A stretch of DNA of 5,393 nt from Chlorokybus atmophyticus (GCA_009103225.1 RHPI01000772.1:144875-150267); one strand, 5' to 3'. Numbered from the stretch's first letter, positions 1 to 5,393 are shown. The notes: generated by a model from the letters alone, not told the origin. Translations and numbers: made by a program.

Positions 1-24
1 GCGTTTTGTGTGTGCAGAGTCACA

Positions 25-1377
25 ATGGATGCTCCAGCAGCAGCAGTAATGCGAGGCATGTTACTGGCCATCATTGGGGCGTTGATCGCCACAATCAGGC
101 AGGCGTTGACCAGTCACCAAGCTCGGCGTCAGCGTTTGCTATCCTTGCCAGCAGATGGAGAGGACATGCACTCCACAAGCACTGCATGGGCGGCTGTTGC
201 TACGATGCGAGAGCATGTCAGCATTTGGTATTGCTTTCCGCGGACACAAGCGTGGTTTGATAGAGTCGTGTCTGTACATTGGCCTGATGCTATGTGGAAG
301 ACTCACTTTCGTTCGAGTGCAGCTTCATTCAATGCATTGTGCCAGGCCTTATCTAACACTGAGTTATTTAAAATCGATACACGCTTTAGAGAAGCGATAC
401 CATTGCATAAGCGGGTTGCCATAGGGTTGCATAGGCTTGGACATGGTACCCCTTATCATGTGTTAGGTGAGTTGATGGGTGTAAGCACTGCTAGTGCTTG
501 CCAAATTTGTGAGCAGTTTGTGCGAGTTGTCAGTGCAGAACTGCGTGTGTTAATAGCATGGCCGGAGGGTGCGCGCTTGAGGCAAGTAATGGCGCGTTGG
601 GAGGGTAAAGGATTCCCAGGCTGCGTAGGCGCTATAGATGGCAGTCACATTATGATCAAGAAGCCGACTACTCCACACGCTGCTGATTACTTCAACCGCA
701 AAGGCAGCTACTCCATCATCCTTCAAGTAAGCGTGTACCTATCTATGCAACCTATGCAAGTATGACCCATGCATTGTGTCGCCACAAGTTGTGTCGTACA
801 TAAAACTGCATGCGTGCTGCAGGCCGTGGTCGATTACGACCTGCATTTCACCCATATCGACATTGGCTGGCCCGGCAGTGTGCATGATGCAAGGGTGTTC
901 AGCAGTTCCGGGTTGTATCGATCCATTTACCAAGACAAGACCATCATGCAAGAGCCCATCCTGACACTTGACTCTGGTGATCGTGTGACCCCTTACATTC
1001 TCGGTGATGCTGCATACCCGTTAACTCAACACCTGATCGTGCCCTACCCTGGACAGCGTGATGCTTTACCTGAGTGGCAGAGTGTTTTCAACTTTCGCCA
1101 CTCGTCCGCACGCATGGCTGTTGAACGAGCGTTCGGGGTGCTAAAAAGCAGGTGGCGCATCTTGAAGGAGACTATCAGTAGCGACGTGTTGTCCGTGCCT
1201 TATGTTATTGGTGCATGTTGTGTACTTCACAACTTCTGTGTTAGAGCGGGGGAGGAGCCTTTAGACTATGCGCTAGATGCTGATGGAGATATGGCCCTGC
1301 ATGCTACTGCAGACAATGACAACCTGGACAACACTGGTAGCTTGGTCAGAGACCTACTAGCGGAACAATTCATGTAG
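25..1377 (+). CDS. Harbinger/PIF DDE transposase (HARBI1-like, DDE_Tnp_4 family); exons 25-726 and 823-1377, about 418 aa
   Basis: Joined translation shows family motifs REAIPLHKRVAIGLHRL (HTH region), GAIDGSHI, YFNRKGSYS, GWPGSVHDARV, ILGDAAYPL, FNFRHSSARMAVERAFGVLKSRW and ACCVLHNFC. Catalytic D (637-639), D (1006-1008) and E (1123-1125) are present. The start is uncertain because an upstream exon is possible. Confidence 0.93.
727..822 (+). other. Spliceosomal intron in the transposase gene (96 nt, phase 0)
   Basis: CAA|GTAAGC donor and GCTGCAG|GCC acceptor. Removal skips the TGA at 763-765 and restores YSIILQ-AVVDY. Confidence 0.9.
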
Positions 1378-1413
1378 TGCAAATTGCTATCACGTTGCAA
1401 CACTAACCCTACT

Positions 1414-1420
1414 TGTAACA
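1414..1420. terminator. Possible overlapping poly(A) signals: TGTAA (+, 1414-1418) and TGTTA (-, 1420-1416)
   Basis: Located in the 92-bp gap between the two convergent stop codons. UGUAA is the chlorophyte poly(A) signal. Short motif that could be chance. Confidence 0.3.
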
Positions 1421-1469
1421 TTGTTCCCTGCTACAGATACATAATGCATGATTTTGCTACAACATGCCC

Positions 1470-3536
1470 TCAAACGGAACGCAGTGTCATAATAGCCTCA
1501 CTCAGCATTTTTCCTAGACTTAAAATAGCTGAGCACTGCTTATCCCCCTCTGCCTTAAGTGCTGCTAGCTCTATCTGCTTGGCAGCTGCCTCCCTTTCGG
1601 CGCGCTCCGCTGCCATACGTTCCTGCTGCTCACACTGGCGGTTGATCGCGTCACTAATGGAAGAGACCTTGGCCTTGCGCTTCTTACCCGTGGTGCCAGC
1701 AGTCTCATCTAGAATAGCACAACGTAAGCATGCTATTGCCAAGTGTGAGGCAGTCTTGCTTGACAACATGAACATACCTTGGCAAGTCTTTGATGGCTCC
1801 TCCTCACCTCCCCCGGCGGTGAAAGAGGTGGGTGGCTCTGCAGCTGCGGTGCTGCCCAACGCGTCCTCCATCAACTCGTAGACACGGATGTTGTTGCCCA
1901 GCAAGTTGTTGGGCACTTCCCACTCCTTCTTGTGATCTACCTCAAGGCTGAAGTAGTCGGGTGCGCCTGACCGCCTAGCAAAGCGACGGATCTCATAGTA
2001 TTGCGATCTCATGTTGCTCCACCTGTAGCCCATGCACATGTTAGCAAGGCGCACTACCCACTCACATACACGAACCCTGGCTGCATACATACGTTCAAAT
2101 GCACACAACAACCAGCAAGTGGCTGACCTATCATCGCACTGAGCGGGTGTGCGCTCGAACACCCCATTGGCTGCCTCGGCAAGCTTAGATGCAGCTGCTG
2201 CAATCTCCTTCCACTTCAAGGTCTTGTTCTTGCTTGCTTGGTAAACGCCGGTGGCCCACTTCTCGTGGGACTCCTTGTGTGCAGCAATCAACCAAATGCT
2301 TTCCGCTGCACTCCACGTTCCTGCACGCTTTTTGCCTGCACAGTACACGCCGGGCAGTCATGCAAGCACCTACTCTCATTCTACACACCTGCACGCGCGC
2401 AGCCTCTAGCCATGCACATGTACAAACTTCAACACTGACTGTGCACGTGCACGCAGGTGCTGTGAGTGTGCACACACATGCACGCTAGCAGATTCTGACT
2501 GTGAACACACACGCACAATTATTGTATCACCATGCACACACATGCAAGCACCTATCAATCTACACACCTGCACGCGCACAGCCTCTAGCCATGCACATGT
2601 ACAAACTTCAACACTGACTGTGCACGTGCATGCAGGTGCTGTGAGTGTGCACACACATGCATGCTAGCAGATTCTGACTGTGCACACACATGCACAGTTA
2701 TTGTATCACCATGCACGCACATGCACGAATTGCTTGACTCTACACACACATACATCACAGCACACAAACACATTCGCACTGCGCACACGTGCACATTCTA
2801 GCACATGCATGCAGCACGCAAGCTCATCCAGACTGTGCACACACGTGTACCTGCTGCTGCAGGCGTGGCCTTCTTCTTCTTCGAAGGGGCACTTCGCGCA
2901 ACATGCTCAGACGTTGGGCAATGCACCGGCGCAGTTTCGGAGTGCGCGGGGGGCTCTTGAGCCGGAATGGGCTCAGTCGGCACGGTGCTGGGCGGCGAGT
3001 CGGGGCGTGCGTCTGGCCAAGACATTGCGGGTGCTGGGATGGGCATCTGCAGATCGGAATCACGCCACTGAGTGATGCATGAATTGAATGCACGCACGCA
3101 CGCATGCAAGCTCACTCGCACACACACACACGCACTCACATCTGCAATTACACTCTCACACACACGCACACACTCACAAGTACAATCACACTCTCACACT
3201 CACGCACGCACGCACTATACTGCACTGCACATACACGCACGCACTCACATACGCAATCACACTCTTACACACACGCACAAACACACACACACACATACGC
3301 ATGAACACACACGCACGCACGCATGCACGCACGTGCAATCACACCTGCACCAGACGAGGTCCTGTGGCTGGGTTGGGAGGGATGTGCTGCAGTAGCTCAT
3401 GCGCTCGCTGCGCCCAATAGCCATCAAGGGTTACATCCGGTGACGTGGACGCAGCATAGTGCAGTCTACCTGGTGCAGCAGTGGGTTGACTAGCTTGCAT
3501 TGCATGCCACAGATGCTGCATGTGCTGAGCGTCCAT
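1470..3536 (-). CDS. Myb/SANT-like (trihelix-type) DNA-binding protein, Harbinger ORF1; exons 3536-3345, 3046-2851, 2335-2128, 2022-1778, 1708-1470; about 359 aa
   Basis: Spliced model gives 1080 nt in one frame with GT-AG introns. Trihelix pattern WSAAESIWLI...KWKEIA...RTPAQCDDR|WSNMRSQY is restored by removing 2127-2023. Has basic NLS-like runs (KKKK, KKR, KKRK), a Pro/Ala-rich N-terminus and an E/A/R-rich coiled-coil-like C-terminus. Exons 1-2 are less certain than exons 3-5 (alternative in-frame acceptor before 3067). Confidence 0.8.
1709..1777 (-). other. Myb gene intron 4 (69 nt, in frame, stop-free)
   Basis: CAAG|GTATGT donor, TTCTAG|AT acceptor and a GCTTAC branch-like motif; phases match. 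Could be retained because it has no stop. Confidence 0.6.
2023..2127 (-). other. Myb gene intron 3 (105 nt, in frame, stop-free)
   Basis: AG|GTCAGC donor, GCTAAC branch point and CTACAG|G acceptor. Interrupts the conserved QC..RW.NM helix. Confidence 0.85.
2336..2850 (-). other. Myb gene intron 2 (515 nt)
   Basis: CAG|GTACAC donor and TGTGCAG|GC acceptor; phase 1 at both ends gives ...PAAA-G-KKRAGTW. Confidence 0.7.
2359..2760. repeat. Tandem duplication with a unit of about 179-182 bp (units 2359-2540 and 2541-2719, plus a degenerate partial third) inside Myb intron 2
   Basis: AGCCTCTAGCCATGCACATGTACAAACTTCAACACTGACTGTGCACGTGCA occurs at 2401 and 2580 (offset 179). Confidence 0.9.
3047..3344 (-). 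repeat. Myb intron 1 (298 nt), filled with CA/CACG low-complexity alternating purine-pyrimidine sequence
   Basis: GTGCAG|GTGTGA donor and TCTGCAG|ATG acceptor, both phase 0. The degenerate (CA)n/(CACG)n tract explains the HTHT-rich spurious ORFs. Confidence 0.75.
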
Positions 3537-3921
3537 AGCAAGCAACACAACAAACCACCTCGCAATGCCACCGCCTCCGCCTGCCCTGCGAACTCCGCCG
3601 TCGCAGTCTTACAAAAACCCCAGCGCCGGCATGTTTGAAATACACGACAAAAGGCGGAGTATCAGCTCAGGCTTTGTCGTCCACTCAGACGCGACCGCAA
3701 CTGCCGCGGCCCCCCTTAACATTTCCTAAAGCCGCTCGGGAGGTGGTTTAGGAAAAGTTGATAATGCACTGCAATGCATTGCAGACAAATAGCCACGCTG
3801 GCATCGAGGTTAAGCAGCTCGATACTAACCGGCGGCCTAATCGACTAGTGTAACTGGTGCCTCCATTAGGTTAGAACGAAAAGCGCCGCCACGTTTGATA
3901 ACTGCGAGGCTCGAACCTTAG

Positions 3922-3935
3922 GTGTAAAGACCCTC
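3922..3935 (-). repeat. Putative TIR of copy A (GAGGGTCTTTACAC read inward)
   Basis: Directly abuts TAA. G-start with TTT at positions 8-10 resembles PIF/Harbinger TIR layout (compare maize PIF GGGCCCGTTTGTTT). TIR length cannot be fixed without the other end. Confidence 0.75.
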
Positions 3936-3941
3936 TAAGAG
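3933..3941 (+). other. Junction 9-mer CTC-TAA-GAG (TAA at 3936-3938 is TSD-like)
   Basis: Reverse complement CTCTTAGAG fits the PIF target consensus CWCTTAGWG. Repeated directly at 4031-4039. Confidence 0.8.
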
Positions 3942-4030
3942 CGCTTTTGGTTCTAACCTAATGGAGGCACCAGTTACACTAGTCGATTAGGTCGCCGGTT
4001 AGTATCGAGCTGCTTAACCTCGATGCCAGC
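3942..4030 (+). repeat. 89-nt filler copied from subterminal sequence 4087-4175 (direct) / 3797-3885 (inverted)
   Basis: Identical to 4087-4175 (offset 145) except 3992 T vs 4137 C. G3941 also matches G4086. Confidence 0.95.
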
Positions 4031-4039
4031 CTCTAAGAG
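4031..4039 (+). other. Second junction 9-mer CTC-TAA-GAG (TAA at 4034-4036)
   Basis: Direct repeat of 3933-3941; TAA immediately precedes the copy B terminus. Confidence 0.8.
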
Positions 4040-4050
4040 GGTCTTTACAC
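4037..4050 (+). repeat. Putative TIR of copy B (GAGGGTCTTTACAC)
   Basis: Exact reverse complement of 3922-3935, preceded by TAA. Confidence 0.75.
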
Positions 4051-4435
4051 CTAAGGTTCGAGCCTCGCAGTTATCAGACGTGGCGGCGCTTTTGGTTCTA
4101 ACCTAATGGAGGCACCAGTTACACTAGTCGATTAGGCCGCCGGTTAGTATCGAGCTGCTTAACCTCGATGCCAGCGTGGCTATTTGTCTGCAATGCATTG
4201 CAGTGCATTATCAACTTTTCCTAAACCACCTCCCGAGCGGCTTTAGGAAATGTTAAGGGGGGCCGCGGCAGTTGCGGTCGCGTCTGAGTGGACGACAAAG
4301 CCTGAGCTGATACTCCGCCTTTTGTCGTGTATTTCAAACATGCCGGCGCTGGGGTTTTTGTAAGACTGCGACGGCGGAGTTCGCAGGGCAGGCGGAGGCG
4401 GTGGCATTGCGAGGTGGTTTGTTGTGTTGCTTGCT

Positions 4436-5121
4436 ATGGACGCTCAGCACATGCAGCATCTGTGGCATGCAATGCAAGCTAGTCAACCCACTGCTGCACC
4501 AGGTAGACTGCACTATGCTGCGTCCACGTCACCGGATGTAACCCTTGATGGCTATTAGGCGCAGCGAGCGCATGAGCTACTGCAGCACATCCCTCCCAAC
4601 CCAGCCACAGGACCTCGTCTGGTGCAGGTGTGATTGCACGTGCGTGCATGCGTGCGTGCGTGTGTGTTCATGCGTATGTGTGTGTGTGTGTTTGTGCGTG
4701 TGTGTAAGAGTGTGATTGCGTATGTGAGTGCGTGCGTGTATGTGCAGTGCAGTATAGTGCGTGCGTGCGTGAGTGTGAGAGTGTGATTGTACTTGTGAGT
4801 GTGTGCGTGTGTGTGAGAGTGTAATTGCAGATGTGAGTGCGTGTGTGTGTGTGCGAGTGAGCTTGCATGCGTGCGTGCGTGCATTCAATTCATGCATCAC
4901 TCAGTGGCGTGATTCCGATCTGCAGATGCCCATCCCAGCACCCGCAATGTCTTGGCCAGACGCACGCCCCGACTCGCCGCCCAGCACCGTGCCGACTGAG
5001 CCCATTCCGGCTCAAGAGCCCCCCGCGCACTCCGAAACTGCGCCGGTGCATTGCCCAACGTCTGAGCATGTTGCGCGAAGTGCCCCTTCGAAGAAGAAGA
5101 AGGCCACGCCTGCAGCAGCAG
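4436..5121 (+). pseudogene. Mirror copy of Myb exons 1-2 (4436-4627, 4926-5121) with premature TAG at codon 41
   Basis: TAT TAG GCG at 4553-4561 versus TAT TGG GCG in copy A (TGG at 3416-3414). Depends on the exon 1 model being right. Confidence 0.7.
4628..4925 (+). repeat. Mirror of Myb intron 1, GT/GTGC low-complexity tract
   Basis: Exact reverse complement of 3047-3344. Confidence 0.85.
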
Positions 5122-5393
5122 GTACACGTGTGTGCACAGTCTGGATGAGCTTGCGTGCTGCATGCATGTGCTAGAATGTGCACGTGTGCGCAGTGCGAAT
5201 GTGTTTGTGTGCTGTGATGTATGTGTGTGTAGAGTCAAGCAATTCGTGCATGTGCGTGCATGGTGATACAATAACTGTGCGTGTGTGTGCACAGTCAGAA
5301 TCTGCTAGCGTGCATGTGTGTGCACACTCACAGCACCTGCGTGCACGTGCACAGTCAGTGTTGAAGTTTGTACATGTGCATGGCTAGAGGCTG

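Follow-up and report, generated by a model that had tools for sequence, protein, structure and literature searches.

How do two copies of one transposon come to stand head to head, and what becomes of the palindrome that they form? The question is raised by a 5,393-nt stretch of DNA from Chlorokybus atmophyticus (GCA_009103225.1 RHPI01000772.1:144875-150267), referred to below, at its full length, as the window. Our best reading is that it holds two separate copies, E1 on the left and E2 on the right, of one young two-gene PIF/Harbinger transposon, placed head to head at the ends that carry their Myb-like genes. A repeat finder returned an inverted repeat with arms at 2579-3941 and 4031-5393, each 1363 nt long, 99% complementary and separated by 89 nt; the right limit (5393) is the window edge, so the arms are at least 1.36 kb long. 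Base-by-base comparison of arm with arm gave seven mismatches over the 1363 nt. The mismatch at 3937/4035 falls on the second base of TAA, a triplet that is read on the plus strand on both sides (3936-3938 and 4034-4036), so that it reflects a direct repeat rather than a true mismatch. Counted from TAA to TAA, both included, the centre spans 101 bp. E1 ends on its Myb side with ...CCCTC at 3935, and its transposase-side end lies upstream of the window; the part of E2 in view runs from its Myb-side terminus (GAGGGTC...) to intron 2 of its Myb-like gene.

The element is assigned to PIF/Harbinger by the combination of a DDE_Tnp_4 transposase gene, a Myb/SANT-like gene and a terminal TAA. The transposase lies on the plus strand of 1-1377, and its second exon matches DDE_Tnp_4 (PF13359) with E = 5.6e-31 and 107.8 bits, against a cut-off of 24.8; PF04827 is matched as well (E = 1e-15). 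The Myb/SANT-like gene lies on the minus strand and matches Myb_DNA-bind_4 (PF13837) with E = 7.5e-5 and 23.5 bits, just below the Pfam cut-off of 27. These domains, together with the arm comparison, bear out an earlier note on this DNA, which had described a head-to-head palindromic Harbinger dimer with arms of at least 1.36 kb around a 101-bp centre.

The position of the symmetry axis was examined against family copies in four low-depth Logan contig sets (X1-X4), which apparently come from other strains or species and differ from the window at shared positions; holes in their coverage prove nothing. A 463-nt X2 contig aligns with 3511-3939; beyond that point it has 30 nt or more of sequence that the window lacks. 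Another copy of the family thus ends in ...CCCTC followed by TAA and a different flank, and the axis of the palindrome coincides with a true transposon end. TAA adjoins the visible terminus of E1, of E2 and of the X2 copy, the opposite element ends of E1 and E2 lying outside the window; of the terminal inverted repeat (TIR), the window therefore holds the Myb-side terminus, seen twice. No exact match to the 20-nt terminus was found in the metagenome contigs scanned. An axis produced by random fold-back could fall anywhere, whereas this one sits at the terminus and its TAA, a position better explained by transposition into or beside TAA. The two corresponding claims of the earlier note, an axis at an element end bounded by TAA and junctions made by transposase rather than by random fold-back, are supported by these observations, the second as far as the position of the axis goes.

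The centre itself is an ordered structure. Between the two TAAs lie 95 nt that start with GAG and end with CTC, a pair of ends expected in a random fragment with a chance of about 1/4096. Ninety of these 95 nt (3941-4030) are a 99% direct copy of 4086-4175 in E2 (89 of 90 positions identical) and are 98% complementary to 3797-3886 in E1. The copied segment, subterminal block A, has in its central version a G (3949) that is also found in E2 (4094), whereas E1 (3878) and the X2 copy have the other state. This shared derived base indicates that the block was copied locally from E2 and was not brought in by a third element. A copy of a 9-bp direct repeat, CTCTAAGAG, flanks the central block on each side; the window holds no match to CWCTWAGWG besides these two, the number expected being 0.19. 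Because the 9-bp duplication accounts for both the GAG and the CTC, the simplest description of the centre is a 99-bp insertion into an ancestral ...CCCTC-TAA-GAGGG..., made up of the 9-bp duplication and 90 nt of templated filler. A random spacer between two TAAs was considered and rejected, the spacer being a local copy with element-like ends. The earlier note had seen here two junctions with a spacer between them; the TAA junctions stand, and the neutral spacer gives way to a copied block A flanked by CTCTAAGAG. A transfer RNA (tRNA) or other RNA origin of the terminal or central block was likewise rejected, ARAGORN finding no gene and Rfam giving no match at E up to 1 within 3600-4400.

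The composition of the centre also bears on two accounts that do without local copying. Harbinger elements insert at TAA and local clustering of insertions is common, so E1 and E2 might have arrived independently at TAAs 95 bp apart within an older fragment of the family, with the centre unrearranged. Such a fragment would have to resemble the E2 block at 89 of 90 positions and carry E2's derived base, and its flanks would have to match the 9-mer by chance. The native flanks of block A are GTGGCG and GTGGCT rather than GAG and CTC, so the centre is not a native piece of the element, and we regard independent insertion as highly improbable. A third copy might instead have inserted into a TAA shared by E1 and E2, the two TAAs being its target duplication, and later have been reduced or excised to GAG, block A and CTC. 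The arrangement TAA-GAG...CTC-TAA does resemble an element with its target duplication, and the family includes deleted copies (one X2 contig lacks the stretch from 1142 to about 1717). However, only 3 nt of each terminus would be left, requiring two deletions with near-identical end points, and the base shared with the adjoining E2 points to local copying; a third element is accordingly quite improbable in our view. Excision of PIF/Pong/Harbinger elements is usually precise, with staggered cuts in the target-site duplication (TSD) and not in the element (PMC4561436). An excision footprint that retains GAG...CTC was considered and set aside as unexpected, since PIF/Pong-type cuts fall in the TSD (PMC4561436).

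The TAA base aside, the arms differ at six sites in 1.36 kb, and the nature of these sites is informative. One (3415/4557) is a TGG-to-TAG nonsense transition in exon 1 of the Myb-like gene, present in E2 only. Further arm-specific variants lie at 3878/4094 and 3895/4077. Three differences lie where the two units of a tandem duplication, 179 bp in length and placed in E1 within intron 2 of the Myb-like gene, are unlike each other. At six diagnostic sites unit 1 has the series C,C,A,C,A,A, unit 2 the series T,T,C,T,G,G and E2 the series C,C,C,C,G,G, E2 being unit 2-like nearer the centre and unit 1-like further out. Read from these sites, the E2 repeat shows the pattern that a single unequal crossover would leave, which predicts that E2 would hold one hybrid unit and would be 179 bp shorter just past the window. 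An X2 contig spans the boundary from unit to unit as well, and with most of the diagnostic states likewise present in X2, the duplication and these states are features of the family. Differences patterned in this way argue for two real, diverging copies and not for a fold-back read or a polishing error.

The same differences weigh on the possibility that the palindrome is an artefact of sequencing or assembly, either a fold-back chimeric long read or a mis-join of dispersed young copies. Palindromic artefacts are common in long-read data, a family as uniform as this one (0.3-0.5% difference from X2 over 1-3260) invites mis-joins, and the centre is spanned by no X1-X4 contig. On the other hand, arms that differ by a nonsense codon and a crossover-like 179-bp mosaic do not derive from a single molecule, the axis coincides with a transposon terminus and its TAA, and a centre ordered as a 9-bp direct repeat around a 90-nt local copy is not made by ligation or template-switch chimeras. 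The window moreover lies inside a piece longer than 60 kb, which extends at least 37 kb upstream of it and at least 22 kb downstream, and this removes the contig-end position that is the usual sign of a palindromic artefact. We consider an artefact decidedly unlikely.

With moderate confidence, a little above an even chance, we favor an origin in two steps: insertion of one copy at the TAA beside a resident copy, followed by repair of a break at the centre. In the first step, a second copy would have inserted into the TAA at the terminus of the first, where the last three bases of the element (CTC) and the TAA would supply most of a PIF/Harbinger-type 9-bp target. The product would have been a perfect palindrome centred on ...CCCTC-TAA-GAGGG.... 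In the second step the centre would have broken, most simply through a hairpin or cruciform that was cut on each strand slightly to the 3' side of its tip, by a few bases; here the outcome is read from the sequence and we infer the mechanism. Opening off the tip would leave CTCTAAGAG, with a top-strand TAA, on both ends, which matches what is observed. Rejoining would then have used 90 nt of filler copied from the E2 subterminal block, 145 bp away, and the resulting 99-bp insertion, which sets the long arms 89 nt apart, should have lowered extrusion strongly. The two copies differ today, having diverged since then, as shown by the six substitutions, the stop in the E2 Myb-like gene and the recombinant 179-bp repeat.

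Two lines of published work are consistent with these steps. An extended 9-bp target, the TSD with 3 bp on each side, is a trait of the superfamily, with PIF/Harbinger inserting at TAA or TTA (PMC2836001). For long palindromes in mouse transgenes and in cultured cells, revision by breaks at the centre has been described (Cunningham et al. 2003, as cited in PMC3300023). In the present locus, TAA and the outermost bases of the element, GAG...CTC, reconstitute such a 9-mer at the junctions, which makes insertion beside a resident copy plausible, and CTCTAAGAG at both junctions of this single locus fits the pattern CWCTWAGWG; the target consensus of maize PIF is CWCTTAGWG.

Several points weigh against this two-step origin. 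None of the X1-X4 contigs spans 3940-4040, these low-depth sets leaving 3961-4680 uncovered. Ninety nucleotides of templated filler is long for end joining, and with its insertion a 90-bp inverted repeat around a 54-nt loop came into being, so that any stabilization is only relative. The perfect palindrome is a postulated ancestor, not an observed one. E1 and E2 are, finally, seen within 1-5393 only, and a mirror that continued beyond the element would favor an inverted duplication.

Such a duplication could have begun with a transposase cut or another break at the element end, followed by fold-back priming or sister-chromatid fusion that made a mirror copy of the element and perhaps of more, with the centre patched during or after the event. 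The arms share states unlike X1 and X2 at 3612, 3626 and 3655 and indels at 3608 and 3656, as sister copies would; an axis at a transposase cleavage site would fit too, and central filler with duplicated bases is typical of break repair. The shared states could, however, be strain-specific and family-wide. Fusion of whole sister chromatids gives dicentrics, a local event requires a second break, and both TAAs and complete termini are kept, as clean insertion predicts. Inverted duplication is, on balance, unlikely, and we retain insertion followed by central repair.

A wider proposal would be that the GAG...CTC termini and TAA rebuild the preferred 9-bp target at every junction, so that copies stack, inverted ones forming palindromes, and that this locus records repair of a central break in one of them. 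We offer it tentatively, as a possibility that we think more doubtful than probable. We know of no statement, for PIF or mPing, that the outer bases with TAA rebuild the 9-mer.

The revised centre has consequences for stability. As a single strand, the central 413 nt fold with -226.7 kcal/mol (z = -40). The long arms stand 89 nt apart and the halves of the local 90-bp inverted repeat 54 nt apart, and in mammalian cells central spacers of 42-52 bp abolished palindrome effects (PMC3300023). By analogy with that work, cruciform extrusion and replication stalling would be much reduced at both spacings. The locus has the long, near-identical arms of an extrusion-prone palindrome but not the absent or very short spacer at the axis; as in centre-revised palindromes, the asymmetry is confined to the centre, the arms are intact and the bases of the tip are duplicated. 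The present centre is thus less prone to extrusion than a perfect palindrome, yet not inert. The expectation in the earlier note that arms able to form cruciforms or hairpins are unstable fits the tighter ancestor that we propose better than the present form with its 89- and 54-nt spacers.

The coordinates of the features are collected in Table 1. The DDE_Tnp_4 match begins at the end of transposase exon 1, and the three-exon model of the Myb-like gene has canonical splice sites and compatible phases; exons of both genes were searched separately. The transposase has 272 homologues, the best of them 50% identical, and all 120 that were listed carry DDE_Tnp_4/Plant_tran domains; protein searches of a large collection gave no identity above 50% in one search or 43% in the other. 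With both genes open and canonical splice sites, E1 may be autonomous. Copies of the family in other sequencing runs are at least 99.5% identical over most of their length, and from this identity among data sets the family looks recently active; over 1-3260 the window differs from X2 contigs by 0.3-0.5%.

Table 1. Coordinates of the transposon copies, their genes, the palindrome arms and the elements of its centre in the window.
Feature	Position	Strand	Evidence
E1, left PIF/Harbinger copy	1..3935	.	Pfam matches; X2 contig
Transposase exon 1	26..726	+	Open reading frame (ORF) 10-765; DDE_Tnp_4 match start; splice sites by sequence
Transposase intron, GT..AG	727..822	+	Splice sites by sequence
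Transposase exon 2, DDE_Tnp_4 core, stop codon included	823..1377	+	Pfam E 5.6e-31
Myb/SANT-like exon 3, carries Myb_DNA-bind_4	1470..2335	-	ORF 1470-2348; Pfam; acceptor and phase checked
179-bp tandem duplication in E1 Myb-like intron 2, units 2373-2546 and 2552-2725, 95% identical	2373..2725	.	Repeat finder
Left arm of inverted repeat	2579..3941	.	Repeat finder, base-by-base comparison
Myb/SANT-like exon 2, 217 nt, phase 1 end	2851..3067	-	Frame matches ORF 2798-3169
Myb/SANT-like exon 1, ATG at 3536, 64 codons, donor CAG|GTGTGA, open in E1	3345..3536	-	Sequence reading
Subterminal block A in E1	3797..3886	-	Repeat finder
E1 terminal 49 nt including TIR	3887..3935	-	Mirror of 4037-4085; end of X2 contig match
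9-bp direct repeat CTCTAAGAG, left copy	3933..3941	+	Pattern scan
TAA adjoining E1 terminus	3936..3938	+	Sequence reading, arm comparison
Central extra block A (A_c), oriented as in E2	3941..4030	+	Repeat finder; G shared with E2
9-bp direct repeat CTCTAAGAG, right copy	4031..4039	+	Pattern scan
Right arm of inverted repeat	4031..5393	.	Repeat finder, base-by-base comparison; continues to window edge
TAA adjoining E2 terminus	4034..4036	+	Sequence reading, arm comparison
E2, right copy, inverted relative to E1	4037..5393	.	Repeat finder, base-by-base comparison
Subterminal block A in E2, probable template of A_c	4086..4175	+	Repeat finder
TAG stop in E2 Myb-like exon 1	4555..4557	+	Mirror of E1 TGG (Trp); mismatch 3415/4557
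E2 version of 179-bp intron repeat, hybrid	5247..5393	.	Six diagnostic sites

Further variation was seen among family copies. The X2 contig mentioned above runs along the element as far as 1142 and resumes at about 1717. It omits some 575 bp, in which the two convergent genes have their 3' ends; the family thus contains non-autonomous copies. An X1 contig lacks 14 nt (1 + 4 + 9) in Myb-like exon 3 (2241-2256), which makes the copy in that organism a frameshifted one. A CA/CGCA-rich imperfect repeat with a 109-nt period makes up intron 1 of the Myb-like gene (3091-3340, mirrored at 4634-4880), and a variant in X1 and X3, in which 13 other letters replace 3141-3194, occurs at far higher depth (114 and 52); this repeat is probably a genome-wide simple repeat.

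The subterminal regions have features of their own. A local palindrome, TTTCCTAAA...TTTAGGAAA, lies at 3718-3759 (mirrored at 4213-4254), about 180 nt inside each terminus and upstream of the Myb-like gene. Of the window's 12 GGTTA/TAACC motifs, 9 cluster in the subterminal blocks between 3790 and 4180, and TTAGG/CCTAA motifs are concentrated there too; to judge by sequence, they are candidate binding sites of the element's Myb/trihelix-like protein, and the extra block at the centre adds a third set. Within the element (4080-4181), block A is preceded by GTGGCG and followed by GTGGCT, and the 5-mer GTGGC common to both sides may be coincidental or may be left over from an earlier duplication.

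Comparison with known systems places the locus among familiar phenomena. Like PIF, Ping, Pong and the further autonomous PIF/Harbinger transposons of maize, rice and animals, this element combines a DDE_Tnp_4 transposase with a separate Myb/SANT-like gene and a terminal TAA; unlike them, it has convergent, intron-containing genes, and its proteins are at most 50% identical to any in the large collection searched. The maize 'double Ds' and abutting or nested multimers built from miniature inverted-repeat transposable elements likewise consist of copies that face opposite ways at a single locus, formed when one copy inserts into or next to a resident. As with double Ds, the facing ends could be substrates for reversed-ends transposition and chromosome breakage. 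The present copies are, in contrast to double Ds, joined end to end at a shared target triplet and not nested, belong to PIF/Harbinger and not to hAT, and are known by sequence alone. The 9-bp context around TAA is of the extended-target kind reported for the superfamily (PMC2836001). The palindromes revised by centre breaks (Cunningham et al. 2003, as cited in PMC3300023) share the asymmetry at the centre, tip bases duplicated as off-centre hairpin opening would predict, and a spaced repeat that is less prone to extrusion; the published cases mostly have small central deletions, whereas the centre here has a 99-bp insertion with templated filler. They also differ in that the host here is apparently a green alga and the event is deduced from one sequence.

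Inverted transposon dimers, insertion beside resident copies and palindromes with modified centres are all already known, and knowledge of the superfamily is unchanged by this locus. The locus is useful as an assembly test of palindromic repeat junctions. If real, it would be a natural record of how a target-specific transposon builds a long perfect palindrome by inserting at the target triplet beside a resident copy, and of how the centre of such a palindrome becomes altered, two processes usually studied in engineered systems. It would also be a possible hotspot of rearrangement, with facing transposon ends beside a copy that has both genes open. If copies of this family do stack at their own termini, an early-diverging green alga would offer, at this locus, a natural and datable case of a palindrome that a transposon built and that was later revised.

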